Shown here piece by piece: positions 28,483 through 61,017 of a stretch of DNA of 64,000 nucleotides. The notes under the pieces were generated by a model that was not told the DNA's origin, did not search any database, and was given only the letters and a program-made list of their open reading frames with translations. Positions within the stretch are counted from its first letter, which is position 1. Each line of letters opens with the position of its first letter. The translations under genes were made by a program, and so were the position numbers. Source of the stretch: Oikopleura dioica (lineage: Eukaryota; Animalia; Chordata); NCBI GenBank assembly GCA_907165135.1, contig OU015566.1:10912001-10976000 (forward strand), in the 5' to 3' direction.

Positions 28483-29406
28483 ATGAGCCATCTCTACGCG
28501 GCCACAAGCTCAATCACTAAGTGGGGCAACACAGGCAAATGCCATCAGTGCGATCGGTAAAATTCAGTCAATATATAAAACATAAGTCAAAGGTGTATAT
28601 TATTACTTAGAAACAGTACCCTAACAATGAACACAGGGTGACTGAGCAGATGTACTTGGTCCGCTACCAGGTCAACAAGAACTGGATCACCAACACTATT
28701 TGCTACAATTGCGCCCGCTCAGTCTGCACTACGAACGATTTCGCCAGTGGGAAGATATTTCTCACGGATGCCAAGTTCAAGTGTCCGGCTTCCAGTTGCG
28801 ACAAGACTGCCTTGTCTTTCTGGGACTTCATTTACGCAACTTGCTGCGACACCGCCTTTAAGGCAAAATACAGTGTCAACTTATCCGAAATCAACTGCAA
28901 AGAAAAGGTCGACTATGCCAACTTCGCCAAGGTGCTTCAGACTCTTGAAGTCGTGGAGAAGGAAGAGCTTGCTACTGATGAGGCTGTTGATGTTGCCGAC
29001 AAGCAGCTAAAATCGGCCGCTTTGAGGCAGAGAATAGTGCACGAACAACGGGAAAAGATCAAGGCACGCGTTGCTGAGACTTTTTTTGACGCTGGACAAA
29101 CGCTCGGACTCGGAAAACTAAAAATGCAATCGAATGGAAATGGTAAATTTAACCGCCCTATATAAAAAAGTATAAAAAACAAAAATGCCGTGGTAATTAA
29201 ATCGAATTTTAGTGGTGAAGCAAAAGTCAGATACGCGATTTACTTGCAACATCTGCAAGAGTGATTACAACAAAGGGAAGAAGTGGGAGAGTGCTCCACG
29301 CTGCGGACATCGAGCATGCATGGACTGCCTGAAGAAAATCGAGAATAAGCTCTGCCCTGAATGCAAGAAACCATTTACTCATGACGAGATCATCAAACTG
29401 TACTAG
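28483..29406 (+). CDS. Cys-rich domain + coiled coil + C-terminal RING finger protein
   Basis: RING CNIC...CGHRACMDC...CPEC in the last exon, joined by a GT-AG intron at ~29152-29209. First-exon junction unresolved. Confidence 0.75.
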
Positions 29407-29605
29407 AAGCTGACTGTACTGTCACACAATCTTCTTTTTATTCTCCTTGATTTACATGATTTCCATTCCTGACATGGTTGAATAAAATTTATTTCTAAAA
29501 ATTCTAGCCTACATTTTTCGACATTGCCACGACCAAATTGTTCGTGTTTTTTATTGAAATAAAGCGATAACTTTTTAGATTTCTTTGTCGAAATCATATA
29601 ACGAG

Positions 29606-31413
29606 ATGGGTGTCTCATTAAAAGATGATCGATACGTAAATATCGACGAATATTCATTCATGCATATGCGTAGTGTTAGTGAAGCCCGCGATCAGAGCAC
29701 TGGCGAGGATGTCATAATCAAGGGCTTCCTTATCTTATCCCCGAAGCAAGCTACTGAGGCAAGACAAGAGGCGGAAGTGCTGAAAAAACTCGGTGAGTGC
29801 TTTCCCTGATCATTTTTAAATCATTATAAGATCATGCCAATATCGTCAAATTTATCGATTTCCTGGATGAGGAGCAGCCAGAATGGGCTACGAATACGTT
29901 TTCCTTTATTGTTATGGAGAACTGCTCTGGCGGAAGCTTAGTCGACTGGGTTGAGCGTCGTAAAGAAGCCAACAAGCCAACGTCGCCTGACGAAGCAGCT
30001 CTTATTGGAGCCCAGATGGTTTCGGCACTGAGCTTCTGCCATGAAAAAAAGCAGATACACCTGGACCTTAAACCGGCAAATGTATTCATACTCGCGGATG
30101 ACATCACGGTAAGAGGCTAAGACATCAAATTGAATAGCAAGTATTAGATAAAAATCGGAGACTTTGGTAGCGCAGCAACCGTAAACTCAGTAGCGCTCAC
30201 TCACACCGCTGAAAGCAGTGATCCAGTCGCCTTTACAAGGATCTACGCGATCCCAGAAGTGTTCAGCAACGACGACTACTCAAAATCGCCAAGGATGGAT
30301 GTCTGGGGTTTTGGGCTCATACTACAAGAAGTTATAACCCTCGAACATGCTTTTGGTCGCGACAAGAAAGGCCACAAAATAAGCAACCTTGTTGTTATCA
30401 GTTCGGTATTAATTTTTAGGACAGGTTCTCAATTAATTCTTAAGTAAATAACATAATGAACGGAGTCCGTTCTTCAATTAGCGATGTTCTTCGCAATCAT
30501 GCAGAGTTCGAGGAGTTTGAGCCAGTGCTTGATAAATGCCTTTCTTCAAAGAAAATTGATCGTCCGAAGAACATGATTCTGTTGCGGGAAGAACCAGTTT
30601 TCGCGAAATTCCTGACAAAAATTGAGGATGGAGAGAAACCGACAGATATCATGGTGCGAAGTGCACCGGAGACCGTTCAATTAGAAGTCAAGCGGCTCAG
30701 GCTCCAAAATGCTGATAAAGATCAGAAAATTCACGAGTTGGAAGAAAGAGTGAAGAGTCTTCAGACGCAACTGGAACGACGACAGCAAAATATAGAGTCA
30801 AAATATGAATCTGGAGACGAATCTCAGCCCGAGGAAAATTCATCTGACGAAGAGGAGACACCATCTCCTCATCTCCAAAACGAGAGAGACTTGATAAATC
30901 AGTTGGGAAGTATCGATGGCGCTGGCCATTTCTTTCAAAATGACAAGGCAAAAGAATCCGGTGGAGTCCGATCTGGGATGAAAGAAGACGAACTTTGCAA
31001 TATCATAAAATTGCTTGACGCGGGAGTCAGAGAAATCAATGTTAAGGTAAGCACGCTTATGCCCTGCGAATCTTCTTCATTCATTTAGTTTACCTGCGAG
31101 GATGAATGGAAAATTGCATATTCCGGATGGCAGCTACAGTTTAACACAGTTATAAACACTGGGGATCTCGCAGAAGATGGTTGGTATCTTTTCTGGGTCG
31201 GAAAGAAAGGTACACTATCGCCATAATGTTCCCACTTACAATTTGTTCTTAGACAAGCCTATGCCATTCAAAGTGATTGCGCAAGAAATCTGCTACGAAA
31301 CTGGGAAAGAAGAAAATCACAAAGTAATTAAAAGTAACGGGAAGCTGCCTATTAGATACAAGAGTACAACCGACTTCTATTTTGTTCGATTCAATATCTC
31401 GTTTTTGGAATAA
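29606..31413 (+). CDS. NEK-like non-RD Ser/Thr kinase + coiled coil + unnamed C-terminal domain
   Basis: VIIK, HANIVKF, MENCSGGSL, HLDLKPANVFI, KIGDFG, YAIPE and DVWGFGLILQEV across GT-AG introns. Tail domain GHFFQND...VRFNISFLE*. Confidence 0.85.
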
Positions 31414-53607: not shown

Positions 53608-55091
53608 ATGAGTAATGTACTGATTATTGCTTCAAAGAGCTATATGCGCGAGAAAATTTTAAAAGCAACGAGAGCGGTTCTTTGTCCAGAAACATTCGTT
53701 TTTCATACATTAGGTAAATTCTATTTTGAAGTCAACGAAGACTATCGCCCCAAAATAGAGAACGAAATAAATAATTAACGATTTTTTCGTCAGATGATTA
53801 TCCGAATTCTGTCGCTTGGCTTAACTCAACGAAGCTACTTATTTCTATCGAGGGCGAATATGAAAAAAGTGTCAGAGAAAATGAACATCTAAAGAAATAT
53901 ATTGACGAAAAAAGGCTCCACTGCTGTCTTCGAGAGGAAGAAAAAGACATTGAGGAGTCTATTTTTGCAGGTTGGTTTCTCGCAAAAAGTTGTCTTTTTC
54001 TGAACCACTCGTAGAATTAAATAGATTCGGATTAACTGACGCACGGTCTGTCAAGAAAACATCTATCGACACTTCTGAGCCCGTGACTGCTTTCGACGGA
54101 ACACTGGCGGATCGATTTTCAACCTGTTTTGTTAACTTTTCTGCTGAGAAAAAACTATTATCCTCATCCGAAAACCATGGGAAAAACGAATCCGCTTTTG
54201 ATTTTTCTAAGTTTTTCGCTGCCTGTGATTGTAAAGAGCTTGGACAGAGGGTAATTCATTTCCCGACGATTTCGAGTACGGAGGATGTATTTGGGAATAA
54301 ATCGGAGGATTGGAAGGGATTGGTGGTTGTCGCGGATAGTCAAATAGCCGGAAAAGGGAGGAAGAAGAATCAGTGGATCTCTCCAGGGGGAAGTTTGGCG
54401 ATGAGTTTTGGCTTTGAAGTTGATTTAGGAACGGCTTTCGTAATTTTTAGATGGTAAATATTTCAATAAAAAAGAGAGCGGGAAATATTCTGTGATGAAT
54501 ATTTCGCTTGTTTTCAAATATTTGCCAAGGCCTACTGAGAGAATATGAGCATCTCGCAGCGATCCAACATCTGGTCGGCCTTTCCGCCGTAAGTGCCTTG
54601 CGAGAGCTTTCAAAATCAGAGAATGTCTTCTGTAAATGGCCGAATGATATTTACTGGAAGCGAGAAATCAAACTCGGAGGGATTATTTCGAGAGCGAGTT
54701 TTATGGGAAGGACCCTGACGGTTTGTGTTGGAATCGGTGTTAATTTGAAGAATGAAAAGCCTTTCCCAGGTTTTTTTTGTTGATGTTTTGTGAATGCAAT
54801 TTTGTTCTAGGAGCGTGTGTTTTAACAGAAACTGAAATTTTACGTGAAGAACTTATGGCAAGGATCTTCAATAACGTCGAAGAAAACTTGCCAAAACTAA
54901 AGGACGGCTCATGGAGAAAAGAATACGAAAGTTTATGGCTACATAGCTCAGAAAATGTCAAGTTTGAAGGGATGAAAGGAGTCGTGAAGGGCGTTGACAT
55001 GGATGGCTTTTTGTTGGTAGAGAATGAAAATGGCGAAGGAAGAGTTATTTTTGCTTCAATTTTCGGTATAAAAAGTTTCGATGTTCAATGA
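53608..55091 (+). CDS. HLCS: Biotin-protein ligase / holocarboxylase synthetase
   Basis: ISSTED, VVVADSQIAGKGRKKNQWISPGG, KWPNDIY, KLGGII, GIGVNL and GVDMDGFLLV. Confidence 0.93.
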
Positions 55092-55410
55092 AGCAAATTT
55101 TATTTTTCATATCAAATTGGACATTAATAACTTTATGAACGTTAGCTAATGTTTCTCTTATATAAATTTTACGTCTAAGAAAGAGTCTAAGAACATCGAT
55201 CATTCCATAAAATATCGTAAAAATGCGTTAAGCGTGAAAGTTTCAGGTAAAAAAATAACTCCCTAAAGTTCTTACTATCGACACCGATAACAACTCATTT
55301 GATCTCATGGAAGGGCTCATACATTCCAAACGCTGACGACACGAATACAGTTTTCTCCCCATTACAGCTATATTTTCTGTGCCGCTGTTTCAATTTTACA
55401 GATTCTCACG

Positions 55411-58400
55411 ATGCGTGATTCATTCTCGCGTTCCGATCCTAATTTCAACAAACTAACAATCAAGCTCGTTCTGAACTTTCATGAACTTGCCGCTGGTCAG
55501 TTTGGCGCCGACTGCTCATTCTTGAAAAATTCCTAATCATTATTCATCGTTCAATGATGAAATTGATTCTGTAACTATCATTTTCCTTTTTTATTATTGT
55601 CTTCATGAGAAGCGCGCGGCGGGACCAAATTTTCAAATTCAGAGGCAAGATAAAGAGCAACCCGGGTGATGAAGGGTTGAACGAAGAGTTTTTCTCGATG
55701 CCGGAACCTTCCAGGTCACTTTCGTTAGATCCACATTCGAATGGGAACGACAGGGATAAGGGGATCTCAAGGCAGAGGCCCAGTTTGCCTCACAAGTCCA
55801 AAAGGTACTAAATGAGAAGCTTAAACCTTAAAACTAACAACCGGTACCAACATTCAGGCCTCCAACAGACGATGTTTTTGAACTCCACGAGGACGATTTC
55901 AGCGCTGGCGTCACTGTCGAGAACCTAAATCTTTTTGAAGCCAAGGAGCAACAGCAACTAGAAATCCGCGATTTTTCCTTCTCCGATCTCCCTAATCTTC
56001 CTAAAGATTGTTTCTATGACCTTGAAACGCTGCACGATATCATCGAAAAATCTTCAAGCTGCGACGATGTCATCGCTCGCATTTTCCGAAATGAAGCGTT
56101 GAAAACAGATTTCATCGAAAAAATGTCAAAAGTTGGCGATTGCAATTTGCGTCTTGAAACGCCGCAGATCCTTTCTCTCAAGTCAGAAGATTCCAGCTAT
56201 TCGACGTTCTTGTGTCACCTGTGCTTACGACCACGTCACCATGGATTTAGGACTGTCAGAGGAGAATCTATCGATGAATATGCTCAGCAAGATTCTCGTC
56301 TGAAATCGCTTTTCGAAGCAATTCGAAATATGCATCCAGATGCAATTTCTGTTGAAAACAAGGGCAGCTACCATGTTTCCATAGACGAAAAATCGAAGAT
56401 GTTTCAATTCCGGAAGTTTCGAAAACCAAGATCGACGGTTGACGAAAAGAAGAAAATCGGCCATGGAGCTCAGGCGATGCTAACAGCCGAACCGCTTTTT
56501 GACGAAGAAGCGAATTGTGTTGAAATTTGTCTAGAACTCGTCCGACTTCAGCGAAAATCAGAGCTTCATCCGAACGGAATCAAATTAAAAAAACTCGAGG
56601 AAATTCTCCAACGAGCTGCGTCTGAATGCAGCTGGTCGAATTTCTCAACCATGGAATGTCCCGCGTCAAAGAATAATGAGTACGCTGATTTTCCGATCTT
56701 AAAAATGGCCAATTTCATATATGAAAAAGAAAGGCGGAACGCAGATGGGCAGTTTACCAAGTGGGTTCGAGAACACTTCCCAAAGATCCTTGTTACTGTC
56801 CGTGCCGCTGTATCTTTTCTCGAGAAAGAAATCGATTGGAGTAAATTTCAAGATCTAAAGAACATCAAAGAAATAAAACGACACTGGAGCAAAATCACTG
56901 AGCTTCGCGACAGCCAGATTCGAATCTCGGATCGGTACGAGCTTCGAGCATCGTTGAGGAAGCTCCCTGATGGACCGCGAAAAACGAAGATAGGAAAACT
57001 TCAGAGCGAATTTTTCCTCCTTATTCTTCGCAAACTCGACGATTCTTTTGCTGGGAGCGAGGATTGGAGAAAGACTTTCTCCAATGATTCTTCTTTTGGT
57101 GATTGGAAGTCGATTTTTGTCGCCAAGTCGGAATTGAAAACGAGATCGGAGACTTATCAAAATAATTTGGAAGGACTAGTTCGATTCTGGGCGGCATTAA
57201 TGCGCCAATCAATGGATCATTCATCTTTAAATTCTTCCTCCGTATTGAGGAAAGGGATTTCAAAGGAAGTAATGAAAGAAATTGAAGCTTTATTGAAGTC
57301 AAGTGAGGCACCTTCTCCTTCGCAATTTATGCCTCAGCAACCGCCTACCCCAGCGATTTCTGAGCAAATTTTCTCGTTCGAGCCAAGTAATGATGCAAAA
57401 GAAGACAGACAAATTATCATCGAAGGCATGGCTCCCTTTTAACAGTTCATTTATTCGATTACACTGTTCATGAGCCAATTACAAAGCTATCGATATTTTG
57501 TATCCGAATGTCTTGCAGGTCCTCGATGAAATCTTCGGAAAATTATATCACGTGCAACCTTTTGGAGTGGTAAAAGACTTTTACCTATTCGAAAACGAGC
57601 ACTATTTGGAGCATCTTTTGCTATCGCATCAGATTCAGAAAGATTTCAGCACTGCGAAGAATCTGTTGGGAATCAACAAATTCTCGTTGATTCAGGAGAT
57701 CGGGTGTTCCACTAGATTAGGTAAATTTATTTATCTCTCGTCTGTGTTGTATTTTTGATTAAGTTTCCGTTATGCAATATTGTGACGGCGGCAACCTTCA
57801 CGATTACATTTCACGCTTGGATGCCGAACCTACGAAACAATCCTCCTACTTGTCGTTCGAATACTCTCGAAATATGTTCGATGGCCTTGCCTATCTGACC
57901 GAAAAAGGACTATATCATAATGATATCAAGCCTGAAAATATCTTTATTCACGATACGAAGGCTTTGATCGGAGACTTTGGTCTTCTTTCGTACAAGGAAA
58001 AGTTCTTACGTTAACTTGAGAAAATACAAGTGATAGTAGATATCTTTTTTTTGATAATTCGTATTCTCAAGCAATCGATCCGATCATATTCTGAGGAAAG
58101 AAAAACGTCCTCTATCAATAATAACTTACGTAAAGCTTTTCAAAAGCGCCTTGACGATTCTGGTCCAATTCTTTATCGTCCGAAAACAAGTCGTCAGAAT
58201 ACGCATCCCGATTACTTTGCGCTTGGGCTCATCCTCATTGAGCTTTTCTTCGAAGGAGGCACAATCGCCCTTCACATCATTCGACATTCGAAACACTGCT
58301 GGTCCGACAAGTGCGAGTTCATCCTTGATAAATCAAACTTTACTAACAAGCTCAATCCAAAACTCGTCTCACAAATCATCAGGCTTCTTCGACCAACAGA

Positions 58401-60183
58401 AGGGTTTTCTGGTCTCCATCGAAGCAATGATTGGAAGAGCGTGTCGCAGTTCTTCAAATCCAATGAAATTCTCTCTAGAGACAAGTTAGAGCTTCAAAAT
58501 GTTCCTGGAATAGATCTTGGGCGAAATAAATTCGTGACGAATTATGTAACTGAACTTATCCATCACATTGATCGCCAGATGAGCTCAACGACGCAGAACA
58601 ACGAACAGAAACAACTCGCTGTTCAGTACATTCAGCAAATCGAAACGATTTTGCAAAAACACCTGGTGGATTTCCGCGGCAGGAACATATCGACTTATGT
58701 CAAGGAATTTATCTTCGGGCAAGGGCTGTATCAAGGGGTTCGAAGAGAGTTGGAGAAGAATATGAAAGCAGAAGGCTCCAAGGTCATTTTGCCAGGAAAA
58801 ACAAATAAGTTTTGGGTTCAGGAAATTTATGCTTTGATGATTTTCATCATGTTCAATTGATTTACAATTCACAGTTTGAGTATCAAACTAAATACGTACT
58901 TCAATTCGTATTATATTAAATTATTTGATTTATTTTGGGTTGTTTTTTTTCTGAGTCCAATAAAAGGTTTACAACCATGTGGATTTGATAGACAAGTGGC
59001 CGATGATTTTCATTCTTCAACAATTACGAAATATAGACTCACACTATTATCAGTGTAATCCACTGGCTCAGATGGAAATCTGCAGCTTGGCAGATAACAA
59101 CAATGGCGTGGATTTATCTGATGCACAGGTTAATTGCTATTGTATAATTCTTAGGTAAAAGAATTTTCAGCGGCAAGATGCGTTGTTGATCATCTTCAGG
59201 GAGATATTCCCGTTTCTTGATCCAAATAAAGGCGCGCTTTTGGAACGCTCGATGCCCGGACTCATTCGATTTCTTTCTGAGTAATATTTTCTCGTTTGCC
59301 CGCTTCTCTTATCCCTTTCTAGGAAAAATGAACATAACGCTCTCTTCGCTGCTTTAACGAACTCAATTATTCACACTCCAGGAGGAGATCCGCTGAAATC
59401 TCCTGACGAAAACAAGGCGGTTTTCATCATACGACTTGGGAACTTTCTCAATACAATACGAACAAGACAGCCGCAAAGTGCCCTAAAGCTCGAGCAGAAA
59501 ATGATCTATCTAGACGAATTCAAGATTCATAAAGGCAAAGCAAATTTTACGTTTCCATTTTATAAGCATTTTCTTAGATTGGATTCCAAAGATCAAGTCC
59601 GAATTCGCCAAGTTCAACGATGGCTTCCCGGACAACTTCAAAATCAAATGCAAAACAACGAAAATAGTCGAAAAGGGAATCGAATACGAGCTCCATGGGA
59701 TCGATTCATTTCTTTGCATGATCGACTATTTCAGAAATCTTCTCGTTCATATTCCGTTGCCAGGTATGAAATATATGAACTTTTCACAAGTTTTCAAAAT
59801 TATATTTAAAACAAAGTGTTATCTTTTCGCATGAGAGGACATATTTTGAAAACGTTAATTTGTCAACAAGACGAATCTACAATCCGATAGCTAACAATTA
59901 TGACGCTTTTTATCTTTCAGCTCGCCTCGGCGGAGCAAAAGCAGATCGCAAAAAGGAAATCGCCATCGCAACTTCCATTGAAAACTTCTTCTACGCCCAT
60001 ATTTCCACCCGCGCGGGCCAATCCACCCAAAAATTCAAAATGTCTCCTGCCCATCTAGTCGCCTTCATCCACCACGTCTTCCCTTCTTTTTTCAAAATCA
60101 TTGTCGACGTCTTCCGAAATGAGTCGCTCTTCTCAGCGAATAACTCCGTCTTTCATCCCTCTTCCCGAATTCCTTTCTGCTAA
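55411..60183 (+). CDS. Large kinase + pseudokinase + KEN-like ribonuclease protein (RNase L/IRE1-like module)
   Basis: Kinase 1: FGKLY, VVK, MQYCDGGNL, HNDIKPEN, IGDFG and DYFALGLILIEL. Degenerate second C-lobe: EFSAARCVV...IFPF. KEN-like: DWIPKI...DSFLCMIDYFRNLLVH...PAHLVAFIHHVFPSFF...ESLF. 5' start uncertain. Confidence 0.75.
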
Positions 60184-60497
60184 AAAGTTCCTTATTTTTA
60201 TTATTTATTTTCTTCACTTTTTTCTTCAAAAAATCATCAAAATTTCGGCCTTTTTACTTCGTTATCTCTTGCTCTAACTCCTTCACGTAATCTTGTCACA
60301 TTTTGTGTCACTTTTTGCTTTTCAAAAGACAAAACGGCAGGAAGGAGTTAAAATTCAAGATCCACGTATTTTTCTATTCATTTTGTTCCTAGCTACTGTA
60401 CCTCCTGTACCAGCTCTCATTTCATTTTCAACATTGTGTTTATTTTCTCCACTACGCCTAGACGATTTTCAATAAGGATTTCTGAGTGAAATTCTTA

Positions 60498-61017
60498 CCC
60501 CCCTTTTTTATTGGCTCATTGGAAAGAGCGTAAAAAGTTATCCCAGATTCGCCCAAAAAAGGATGAAATTTCCAAAAAAATGACGTCATGGCACGTGATT
60601 GAAGTGCCAAAAGTACCAAAACTTACCCGTTCGCGCATTTTCGACTCGTCTGGGGTAGAAGGGCTTGCAATAGCGCAAAATGATCGTCTCGCCGAGCTCT
60701 TGGTGGGCATCTAGTTTTCATCCCTTTTCAACCCTTTTTCATCCCTTTATCTATTGCTCGAAAAATAGAAATTTAAAAAAAGGGTTGAAAAGGGATGAAA
60801 ACTCGATGCCCACCAAGAGCTCGCAGAGACGATCATTTTGAGCTATTACAAGTCTTATTAGCTCAGACGAGTCGAAAATGCTCGAGCGGGAAAGTTTGAG
60901 TTTTTTGGGACTTCAGTCACGTGCCATGACATCATTTTTTCGAAAATTTCATCCTTTCTCGGGTGAACCTGGGATAACTTTTTACGCTCTTTCCAATGAG
61001 CCAATAAAAAAGGGGGG
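60498..61017. mobile_element. Fully palindromic TA-flanked MITE (520 bp)
   Basis: CCCCCCTTTTTTATTGGCTCATTGGAAAGAGCGTAAAAAGTTATCCCAG and its reverse complement at the far end; complementarity continues ~240 bp inward; TA on both sides. Confidence 0.9.

Follow-up and report, generated by a model that had tools for sequence, protein, structure and literature searches.

KEN nucleases are known mainly through two well-studied switches: IRE1, which serves the unfolded-protein response, and RNase L, which acts in RNA decay induced by interferon. A locus in the appendicularian Oikopleura dioica raises the question of whether an invertebrate chordate joins a protein kinase to a KEN-type domain in one gene and, if so, how the product relates to these two enzymes. 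The locus lies in a stretch of 64,000 nucleotides (nt) (GenBank assembly GCA_907165135.1, contig OU015566.1, positions 10,912,001 to 10,976,000 of the forward strand), referred to here as the window, and all positions are given in the numbering of the window. An earlier description, made from the letters of the DNA (hereafter, the sequence-only reading), had called the gene a sensor-less kinase-pseudokinase-KEN ribonuclease of new architecture. Our analysis favors, with a probability of roughly 0.6, a soluble protein that belongs mechanistically with IRE1 and RNase L and is built of several domains, namely an N-terminal region, a PKR-like non-RD kinase and two C-terminal domains, termed KEN1 and KEN2 (coordinates in Table 1).

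The C-terminal exons are predicted to form a KEN fold

KEN2 was recognized by fold comparison only and not by profile methods. We predicted the structure of residues 883 to 1303 of L010, the homologue described below, with AlphaFold from a checked 24-row alignment (A12); a prior model spanning the kinase, KEN1 and KEN2, based on a three-lineage alignment, had a mean pLDDT (predicted local distance difference test score) of 46 and was left unused. In the A12-based prediction, pLDDT reached 82 to 96 across the last domain. By means of VIA-align against 48,161 PDB representatives, run without the Foldseek prefilter, KEN2 of the L010 model (approximately amino acids [aa] 1094 to 1291) was found to have the three-dimensional fold of KEN domains. 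In this model, then, the C-terminal exons form a KEN-fold domain. The domain carries the R-N-x3-H motif RNLLVH, which the sequence and its translation place in the position and frame proposed earlier; across homologues the motif reads RN(L/I)LVH, and its R, N and H are invariant in six lineages. Moreover, the KEN fold is C-terminal to the kinase in the same polypeptide, as seen in the L010 open reading frame (ORF), with which the window exons are colinear. On these grounds (fold, invariant motif and shared polypeptide), the C-terminal KEN domain of the sequence-only reading is retained.

Homologues indicate one transcript and one protein

A representative search with the last exon returned 14 true relatives, all of them short pieces of ORFs found in marine metagenomes or in Logan assemblies; P0008 and P0019, from the same search, were discarded as low-complexity false matches. 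Full-length relatives (717 to 2280 aa) were also searched for, and none was found. A scan of metagenome contigs yielded L010, a 5452-nt contig of a related species with an uninterrupted 1303-aa ORF that is colinear, over residues 51 to 1297, with all coding parts of the window gene. Relative to the genomic contig L014 (82 to 91% nucleotide identity), at least eight short introns are gone from L010, which is therefore a spliced transcript, probably a bicistronic one. Because L010 has a single ORF, the kinase and the C-terminal domains belong to one gene; as judged from this contig, a single mRNA and a single protein comprise the N-terminal region, the kinase and the two C-terminal domains in the species of L010. 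Neither separate genes for kinase and KEN nor a frame-broken last exon, either of which would have undone the earlier proposal, was found.

Beyond the stop codon, L010 runs on for ~430 nt into a second ORF (L010:4430-5452), also with an intron removed. This second ORF is TPR-like in genomic L014, the arrangement is that of an operon-type bicistronic transcript, and no counterpart was seen downstream in the window.

Gene model, conservation and transcription

The gene model was built from a three-frame forward translation of 55000 to 60600, guided by homologues, and describes a single plus-strand gene (55605 to 60183) of 10 exons, whose 3837-nt coding sequence translates as one ORF of 1278 aa. 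Its start codon is the ATG at 55605, rather than position 55411 from which the gene had been drawn, and exon 1 is backed by an LP.KSK match to L010. Six of the nine introns are GT-AG, two GC-AG and one GA-AG; for the three non-canonical introns (introns 2, 4 and 8), the support consists of restored protein blocks that are kept in intronless homologues. More specifically, no splice other than that of intron 2 restores IDILYPNVLQVL, the counterparts of which are LDNFFPNFVKLL in L010 and LDAIYDQLVPIL in L006. An intron is needed between exons 4 and 5 because of an in-frame TAA at 58012; inspection of the window sequence revealed no GT donor that preserves the reading frame, and the intronless orthologue P0026 is continuous across the site (LLSYERLDDSGP). 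Both introns of the sequence-only reading, introns 8 and 9, hold. Intron 8 joins its exons in frame and is absent from L006, L009, L004 and L010, with the spacing there unchanged (L006, L009 and L010 read across the site). Intron 9 likewise joins its exons in frame, at a site that is uninterrupted in L010 (HLPLK-DRLGGAKADRRKE; HLPLK-DRLGG); in genomic L014, a 52-nt intron falls at this codon, a position common to L006, L009, L004 and L007.

Intron positions vary between lineages. In the genomic loci of the L010 lineage (L014:8688-10794 and L015:9752-11871), window intron 8 is missing, and an intron follows FKIK, as it does in L009 and L004 and does not in the window gene; the intron before DRLGG alone is common to all lineages.

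Identity to L010 is 36% over the whole protein, 49% in KEN1 (its best-conserved part), 47% in KEN2 and 27 to 35% elsewhere. As judged from sequence comparison, the gene is under purifying selection; nonsynonymous divergence (dN) from orthologues is 0.09 to 0.26, and synonymous divergence (dS) is saturated or very high. RNA reads from four runs with the same species label represent a divergent lineage, 90 to 95% alike, and fit only in conserved patches, within exons 3, 4, 9 and 10. The orthologue is transcribed in this divergent strain.

These data also bear on whether this copy of the gene is in decay or not expressed, with an intact frame that depends on the choice of non-canonical splice sites. 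Such a copy would be in keeping with the share of non-canonical introns (3 of 9), with the lack of any same-strain RNA read across a junction and with an ankyrin-like repeat that is more degenerate in the window gene than in L006 or L010; yet the reading frame is open in all ten exons, which are colinear with L010, every non-canonical splice brings back a block that intronless homologues conserve, dN is far under dS, and the divergent-strain reads show that the orthologue is transcribed. We consider decay of the locus highly improbable.

Two features of the read data stand apart. An apparent read joint from 57637/57639 to 57770 was rejected, given that its ends are not splice sites and the intervening letters are unread, and it confirms no junction. 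A 39-nt patch at 55458 to 55496 (intergenic or 5') drew 90 to 95% matches from all four RNA runs, on both strands and with unrelated flanks; a fortuitous resemblance to some abundant, unrelated transcript is the probable cause.

A non-RD kinase domain closest by profile to the eIF2-alpha kinases

When single window exons were compared with Pfam and PDB sequences, a kinase match was the only one obtained. The Pfam Pkinase match had an E value of 3.6e-13 for exon 4 alone and of 2.7e-20 for L010 (aa 641 to 794). Conserved elements comprise a catalytic loop H-N/K-D-I-K-P-x-N (HNDIKPEN in the window gene, HKD in L010 and L006), DFG and a D.FA.G..LIE block; Y(R/M)P occupies the APE position, and a lysine in A/V-x-K context lies 19 residues ahead of the alphaC position. 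Of the complete non-RD kinase that had been described, HNDIKPEN and DFG are confirmed. In a PDB search with a profile of the kinase family, the top six matches were PKR, GCN2 and then PERK (E of 4e-20 to 3e-16), ~15 to 18 bits over B-Raf, with an aligned part extending only from the pre-hinge to subdomain IX. IRE1 was not among the top 60 PDB relatives, the best of which were PKR, GCN2, PERK, ULK3 and B-Raf; RNase L, too, is not one of the closest solved structures. Judging from its sequence, the domain may bind nucleotide.

A second RNxxxH domain follows the kinase

The sequence-only reading had placed a degenerate pseudokinase C-lobe, EFSAARCVV..IFPF, between the kinase and KEN. This string mixes two frames across intron 6: EFSAARCVV is the frame-0 reading of 59161 to 59187, partly inside the intron, and IFPF comes from exon 7 in frame 1, which reads RQDALLIIFREIFPFL. 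The pseudokinase was therefore rejected. The space holds instead a conserved helical domain, KEN1, with its own RNxxxH motif.

The KEN1 motif is RNIDSH in the window gene and RNM..H in other lineages, with R, N and H invariant in five lineages. The domain has an invariant block DRQMSSTTQNN(E/D)QK, and IFPFL follows the motif by 28 to 40 residues, so that the order of elements is the same as in KEN2. Like the KEN domain of IRE1 and RNase L, KEN1 sits directly after the kinase. The Pfam family Ribonuc_2-5A (PF06479) matched KEN1 of L006 at 15.0 bits (E of 0.027, profile positions 66 to 108), being the only family to match this piece, and was the sole match to a 399-aa C-terminal piece of L010 at 11.6 bits (E of 0.32, profile positions 65 to 93). 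Both scores are below the curated gathering threshold of 23.3 bits, which neither KEN1 nor KEN2 reaches, and further KEN1-covering pieces (from L010 and P0023) gave no Ribonuc_2-5A match. The predicted structure is unconfident at the KEN1 motif (pLDDT of <50), and hhalign of KEN1 against KEN2 gave nothing past a trivial overlap. MAFFT repeatedly aligned the last helix of KEN1 with that of KEN2; alignments A2, A3, A6 and A9, in which it had stacked KEN1 fragments on KEN2, were dropped. The protein atlas was uninformative for both domains (scores of 0.69 to 0.78). From these sequence features, we put the odds that KEN1 is a KEN/HEPN-like domain at about even.

The N-terminal region is a candidate sensor or scaffold

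The ~590 residues ahead of the kinase align with L010, L006 and P0001 to P0003. They are 27% identical to L010, and against the orthologue L001 their dN is 0.195 with dS saturated; no Pfam family matched the region at an E value of ≤1. Within it lies an ankyrin-like repeat, of which a GDCN.RLETP block is kept in all homologues. The homologous stretch matched Pfam Ank in L006 (E of 0.025) and Ank_5 in L010 (E of 0.11), both below gathering thresholds, and the window protein itself gave no Pfam Ank match. A language-model search with aa 60 to 560 of L010 returned ankyrin clusters only (score of 0.91, with few shared features), which serves as a lead only. The statement that ankyrin repeats are absent is consequently doubtful: it holds for Pfam matches to the window protein, but one repeat has weak matches in two homologues. 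Likewise, the label sensor-less is unproven, because these conserved residues, with their ankyrin-like repeat, could be a sensor; on sequence grounds, the region could be a sensor or a scaffold.

The absence of a signal peptide or transmembrane (TM) helix, also part of the earlier description, was borne out by hydropathy. In 19-residue windows over the whole protein, no hydrophobic N-terminus, signal peptide or TM helix was detected, and the highest-scoring 19-mers fall in a helix of the kinase C-lobe and in a buried helix of KEN. Two Rx4H-like strings, MRQSMDH and RRNADGQ, were considered as catalytic motifs and rejected, as they are not conserved in L010 or L006.

Proposed mechanism and alternative explanations

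In HEPN enzymes, two Rx4-6H motifs jointly make the active site. We propose that KEN2, and perhaps KEN1, would act as a metal-independent endoribonuclease through the Arg, Asn and His of its motif, leaving 2',3'-cyclic phosphate ends, as do IRE1 and RNase L. Activity would be gated by nucleotide binding or autophosphorylation of the kinase together with self-association through the N-terminal region, and the two motif-bearing domains would need to be juxtaposed for activity. The basis for assigning such catalysis to KEN2 is the established behavior of IRE1 and RNase L and the general mechanism of HEPN enzymes (PMC3710099). The gene would belong to an appendicularian-specific KEN expansion, with stress or antiviral RNA decay as its most likely role; this role is made plausible by the interpretation published for the KEN expansion of Oikopleura and by the PKR-like kinase.

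Several points weigh against this reading. The sequence-only reading had named profile and structure comparisons as its check, and only structure comparison gave a KEN fold: KEN2 matched nothing in Pfam at an E value of ≤10 in six homologues, a 16-row KEN2 family profile had no match among PDB sequences, including those of IRE1 and RNase L, and Foldseek alone, run against the PDB and Swiss-Prot models, returned noise and no significant match. The modeled structure is that of the L010 homologue, 47% identical to the window protein in KEN2, and the R, N and H of KEN2 were matched to the catalytic residues of IRE1 by motif. As to the kinase, the Pfam match covers profile positions 50 to 198 only, the N-lobe not being recognized; an alignment with NEK2 shows Gln in place of the alphaC Glu in all three lineages, and the glycine-rich loop (G-loop) is degenerate, with a single Gly. 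By its sequence, the domain could be a pseudokinase or have only weak kinase activity. The RNA reads, being patchy and from a divergent strain, confirm neither expression of this allele nor the GA-AG intron.

With KEN2 recognized by fold alone, its likeness to KEN might be convergent or that of a generic helical bundle, in which case the domain would be an unrelated appendicularian-specific one with a chance Rx4H string. A motif in which the same three residues are invariant in six lineages, within a confidently predicted fold, has to be set beside the silent profiles, and we rate this explanation as very unlikely.

The KEN-fold domain could, alternatively, be a non-catalytic module for RNA binding or dimerization, the true output being PKR-like phosphorylation, for example of a translation factor. 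That the kinase profile is nearest to the eIF2-alpha kinases PKR, GCN2 and PERK and that the catalytic loop and DFG are conserved would suit this view, as would the existence of HEPN families that are inactive binders (PMC3710099). On the other hand, neither motif varies in its Arg, Asn and His between lineages that share 40 to 60% overall identity, which is unusual for an inactive HEPN domain. The KEN parts are also better conserved than the kinase, in which the alphaC Glu is missing and the G-loop is abnormal. Taken together, a purely phosphorylating protein appears unlikely.

Since two motif domains occur in one chain, the juxtaposition required by the endoribonuclease reading could be intramolecular. 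KEN1 and KEN2 would then pack into a composite, Cas13-like HEPN active site without kinase-mediated dimerization, switched by the PKR-like kinase and an ankyrin-like sensor. We advance this variant speculatively and regard it as quite unlikely; if it were true, the composite KEN1/KEN2 enzyme would embody the RNase L principle independently in an invertebrate chordate.

Relation to known KEN proteins

The earlier conclusion that the protein is neither RNase L nor IRE1 is upheld by our data. IRE1 (PDB 3fbv and 4yz9) has a luminal domain and a TM segment. The window protein lacks both, as well as a signal peptide, and no luminal-domain Pfam match was obtained for the window exons or L010. Its kinase, moreover, is non-RD and resembles PKR, GCN2 and PERK more than it does IRE1, KEN1 (~190 residues) lies between the kinase and the KEN fold, and KEN2, which lacks a PF06479 match, shows a structure-based identity of only 14 to 17% to IRE1. 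The protein is not classed as IRE1 because it lacks a luminal/TM part and its kinase is non-RD and not IRE1-like. RNase L, an ankyrin-pseudokinase-KEN protein (PDB 4o1o and 6m11), differs in having a Pfam-detectable ankyrin domain, as compared with at most one weak repeat in the window protein, and in lacking a counterpart of the second RNxxxH domain; no evidence of a 2-5A (2',5'-oligoadenylate) site was seen in the window protein. True RNase L has been reported from jawed vertebrates only (PMC10400998), and this, together with the detection of at most one weak ankyrin repeat, is why the protein is not classed as RNase L. Two Rx4-6H helical domains per polypeptide likewise occur in Cas13 and other two-HEPN proteins, a likeness to be read as an analogy only.

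The architecture had been presented as new, which is correct in part. A lineage-specific KEN expansion in O. dioica was published in 2013, with its members predicted to be catalytically active defensive endoRNases (Anantharaman et al., PMC3710099); the organism and domain family are the same as those of the window gene. The copies in that expansion were described as 'solo', apart from a kinase; by that description the window gene would differ, since a single ORF codes for its kinase, its N-terminal region and both RNxxxH domains. Proteins that combine a protein kinase (PK) with an RNase but fall outside the RNase L clade have a wide distribution among eukaryotes (PMC10400998). The combination of an N-terminal region, a PKR-like kinase, an RNxxxH helical domain and a KEN fold was not found in the literature searched. 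Hence, the KEN expansion in Oikopleura was already known, and the domain arrangement, as predicted here from sequence, appears not to have been described before. Surveys of KEN evolution use the Pfam KEN profile at an E value of 1e-5 (PMC10400998), and those based on PF06479 would miss this gene family because the KEN2 fold is found only by structure.

In an invertebrate chordate lineage, purifying selection maintains a soluble protein in which a PKR-like kinase and a KEN fold are combined with a further RNxxxH domain and an extensive N-terminal region. If active, it would represent a third, independently wired case of kinase-gated RNA decay. It would also offer a concrete gene for probing the role of the published KEN expansion, in a chordate that is amenable to experiments and about whose innate immunity little is known.

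Features of the gene and its neighborhood

Table 1. Window coordinates of the kinase-KEN gene and its parts
Feature	Position	Strand	Remarks
N-terminal region	55605-57425	+	Exons 1 and 2; ~590 aa
Ankyrin-like repeat	~56132-56245	+	GDCNLRLETPQIL...; degenerate in the window gene
Protein-kinase-like domain	57487-58473	+	Exons 3 to 5; non-RD
Kinase AxK lysine	57573-57575	+	From the sequence
Kinase HNDIKPEN	57916-57939	+	From the sequence
Kinase DFG	57973-57981	+	From the sequence
KEN1 (putative KEN/HEPN-like)	58474-59280	+	End of exon 5, exons 6 and 7; model residues ~870-1058; helical
RNIDSH (KEN1 RNxxxH motif)	59027-59044	+	From the sequence
KEN2 (predicted KEN fold)	59323-60183	+	Exons 8 to 10; VFPSFF close to the C-terminus
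RNLLVH (KEN2 R-N-x3-H motif)	59733-59750	+	From the sequence
Exons 1-5	55605-55804, 55858-57425, 57487-57720, 57764-57996, 58147-58815	+	Homologue-guided model
Exons 6-10	58967-59128, 59171-59280, 59323-59534, 59578-59763, 59921-60183	+	Homologue-guided model
Intron 2	57426-57486	+	GC-AG, 61 nt
Intron 4	57997-58146	+	GA-AG, non-canonical, 150 nt; within the kinase activation segment
Intron 6	59129-59170	+	42 nt
Intron 8	59535-59577	+	GC-AG, 43 nt
Intron 9	59764-59920	+	GT-AG, 157 nt

Elsewhere in the window, a multi-exon gene at 28600 to 31400 (plus strand) contains a RING-finger ORF (29197 to 29403), a kinase domain (29830 to 30444) that is 33% identical to exon 4 of the kinase-KEN gene, and a long C-terminal tail. 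The upstream neighbor of the kinase-KEN gene (53972 to 55091, plus strand) is a biotin/lipoate-protein-ligase-like gene; the orthologous metagenome contig has the same neighbor (L001:124-417, PF03099), and local synteny is conserved. Finally, Rfam pointed, in the region of the gene, only to a hairpin or inverted repeat of ~170 nt at 60671 to 60846, 0.5 kb 3' of the stop codon. A dozen unrelated microRNA (miRNA)-precursor models of Rfam match it on both strands, all far below their gathering thresholds, and it resembles a palindromic repeat element more than a miRNA.

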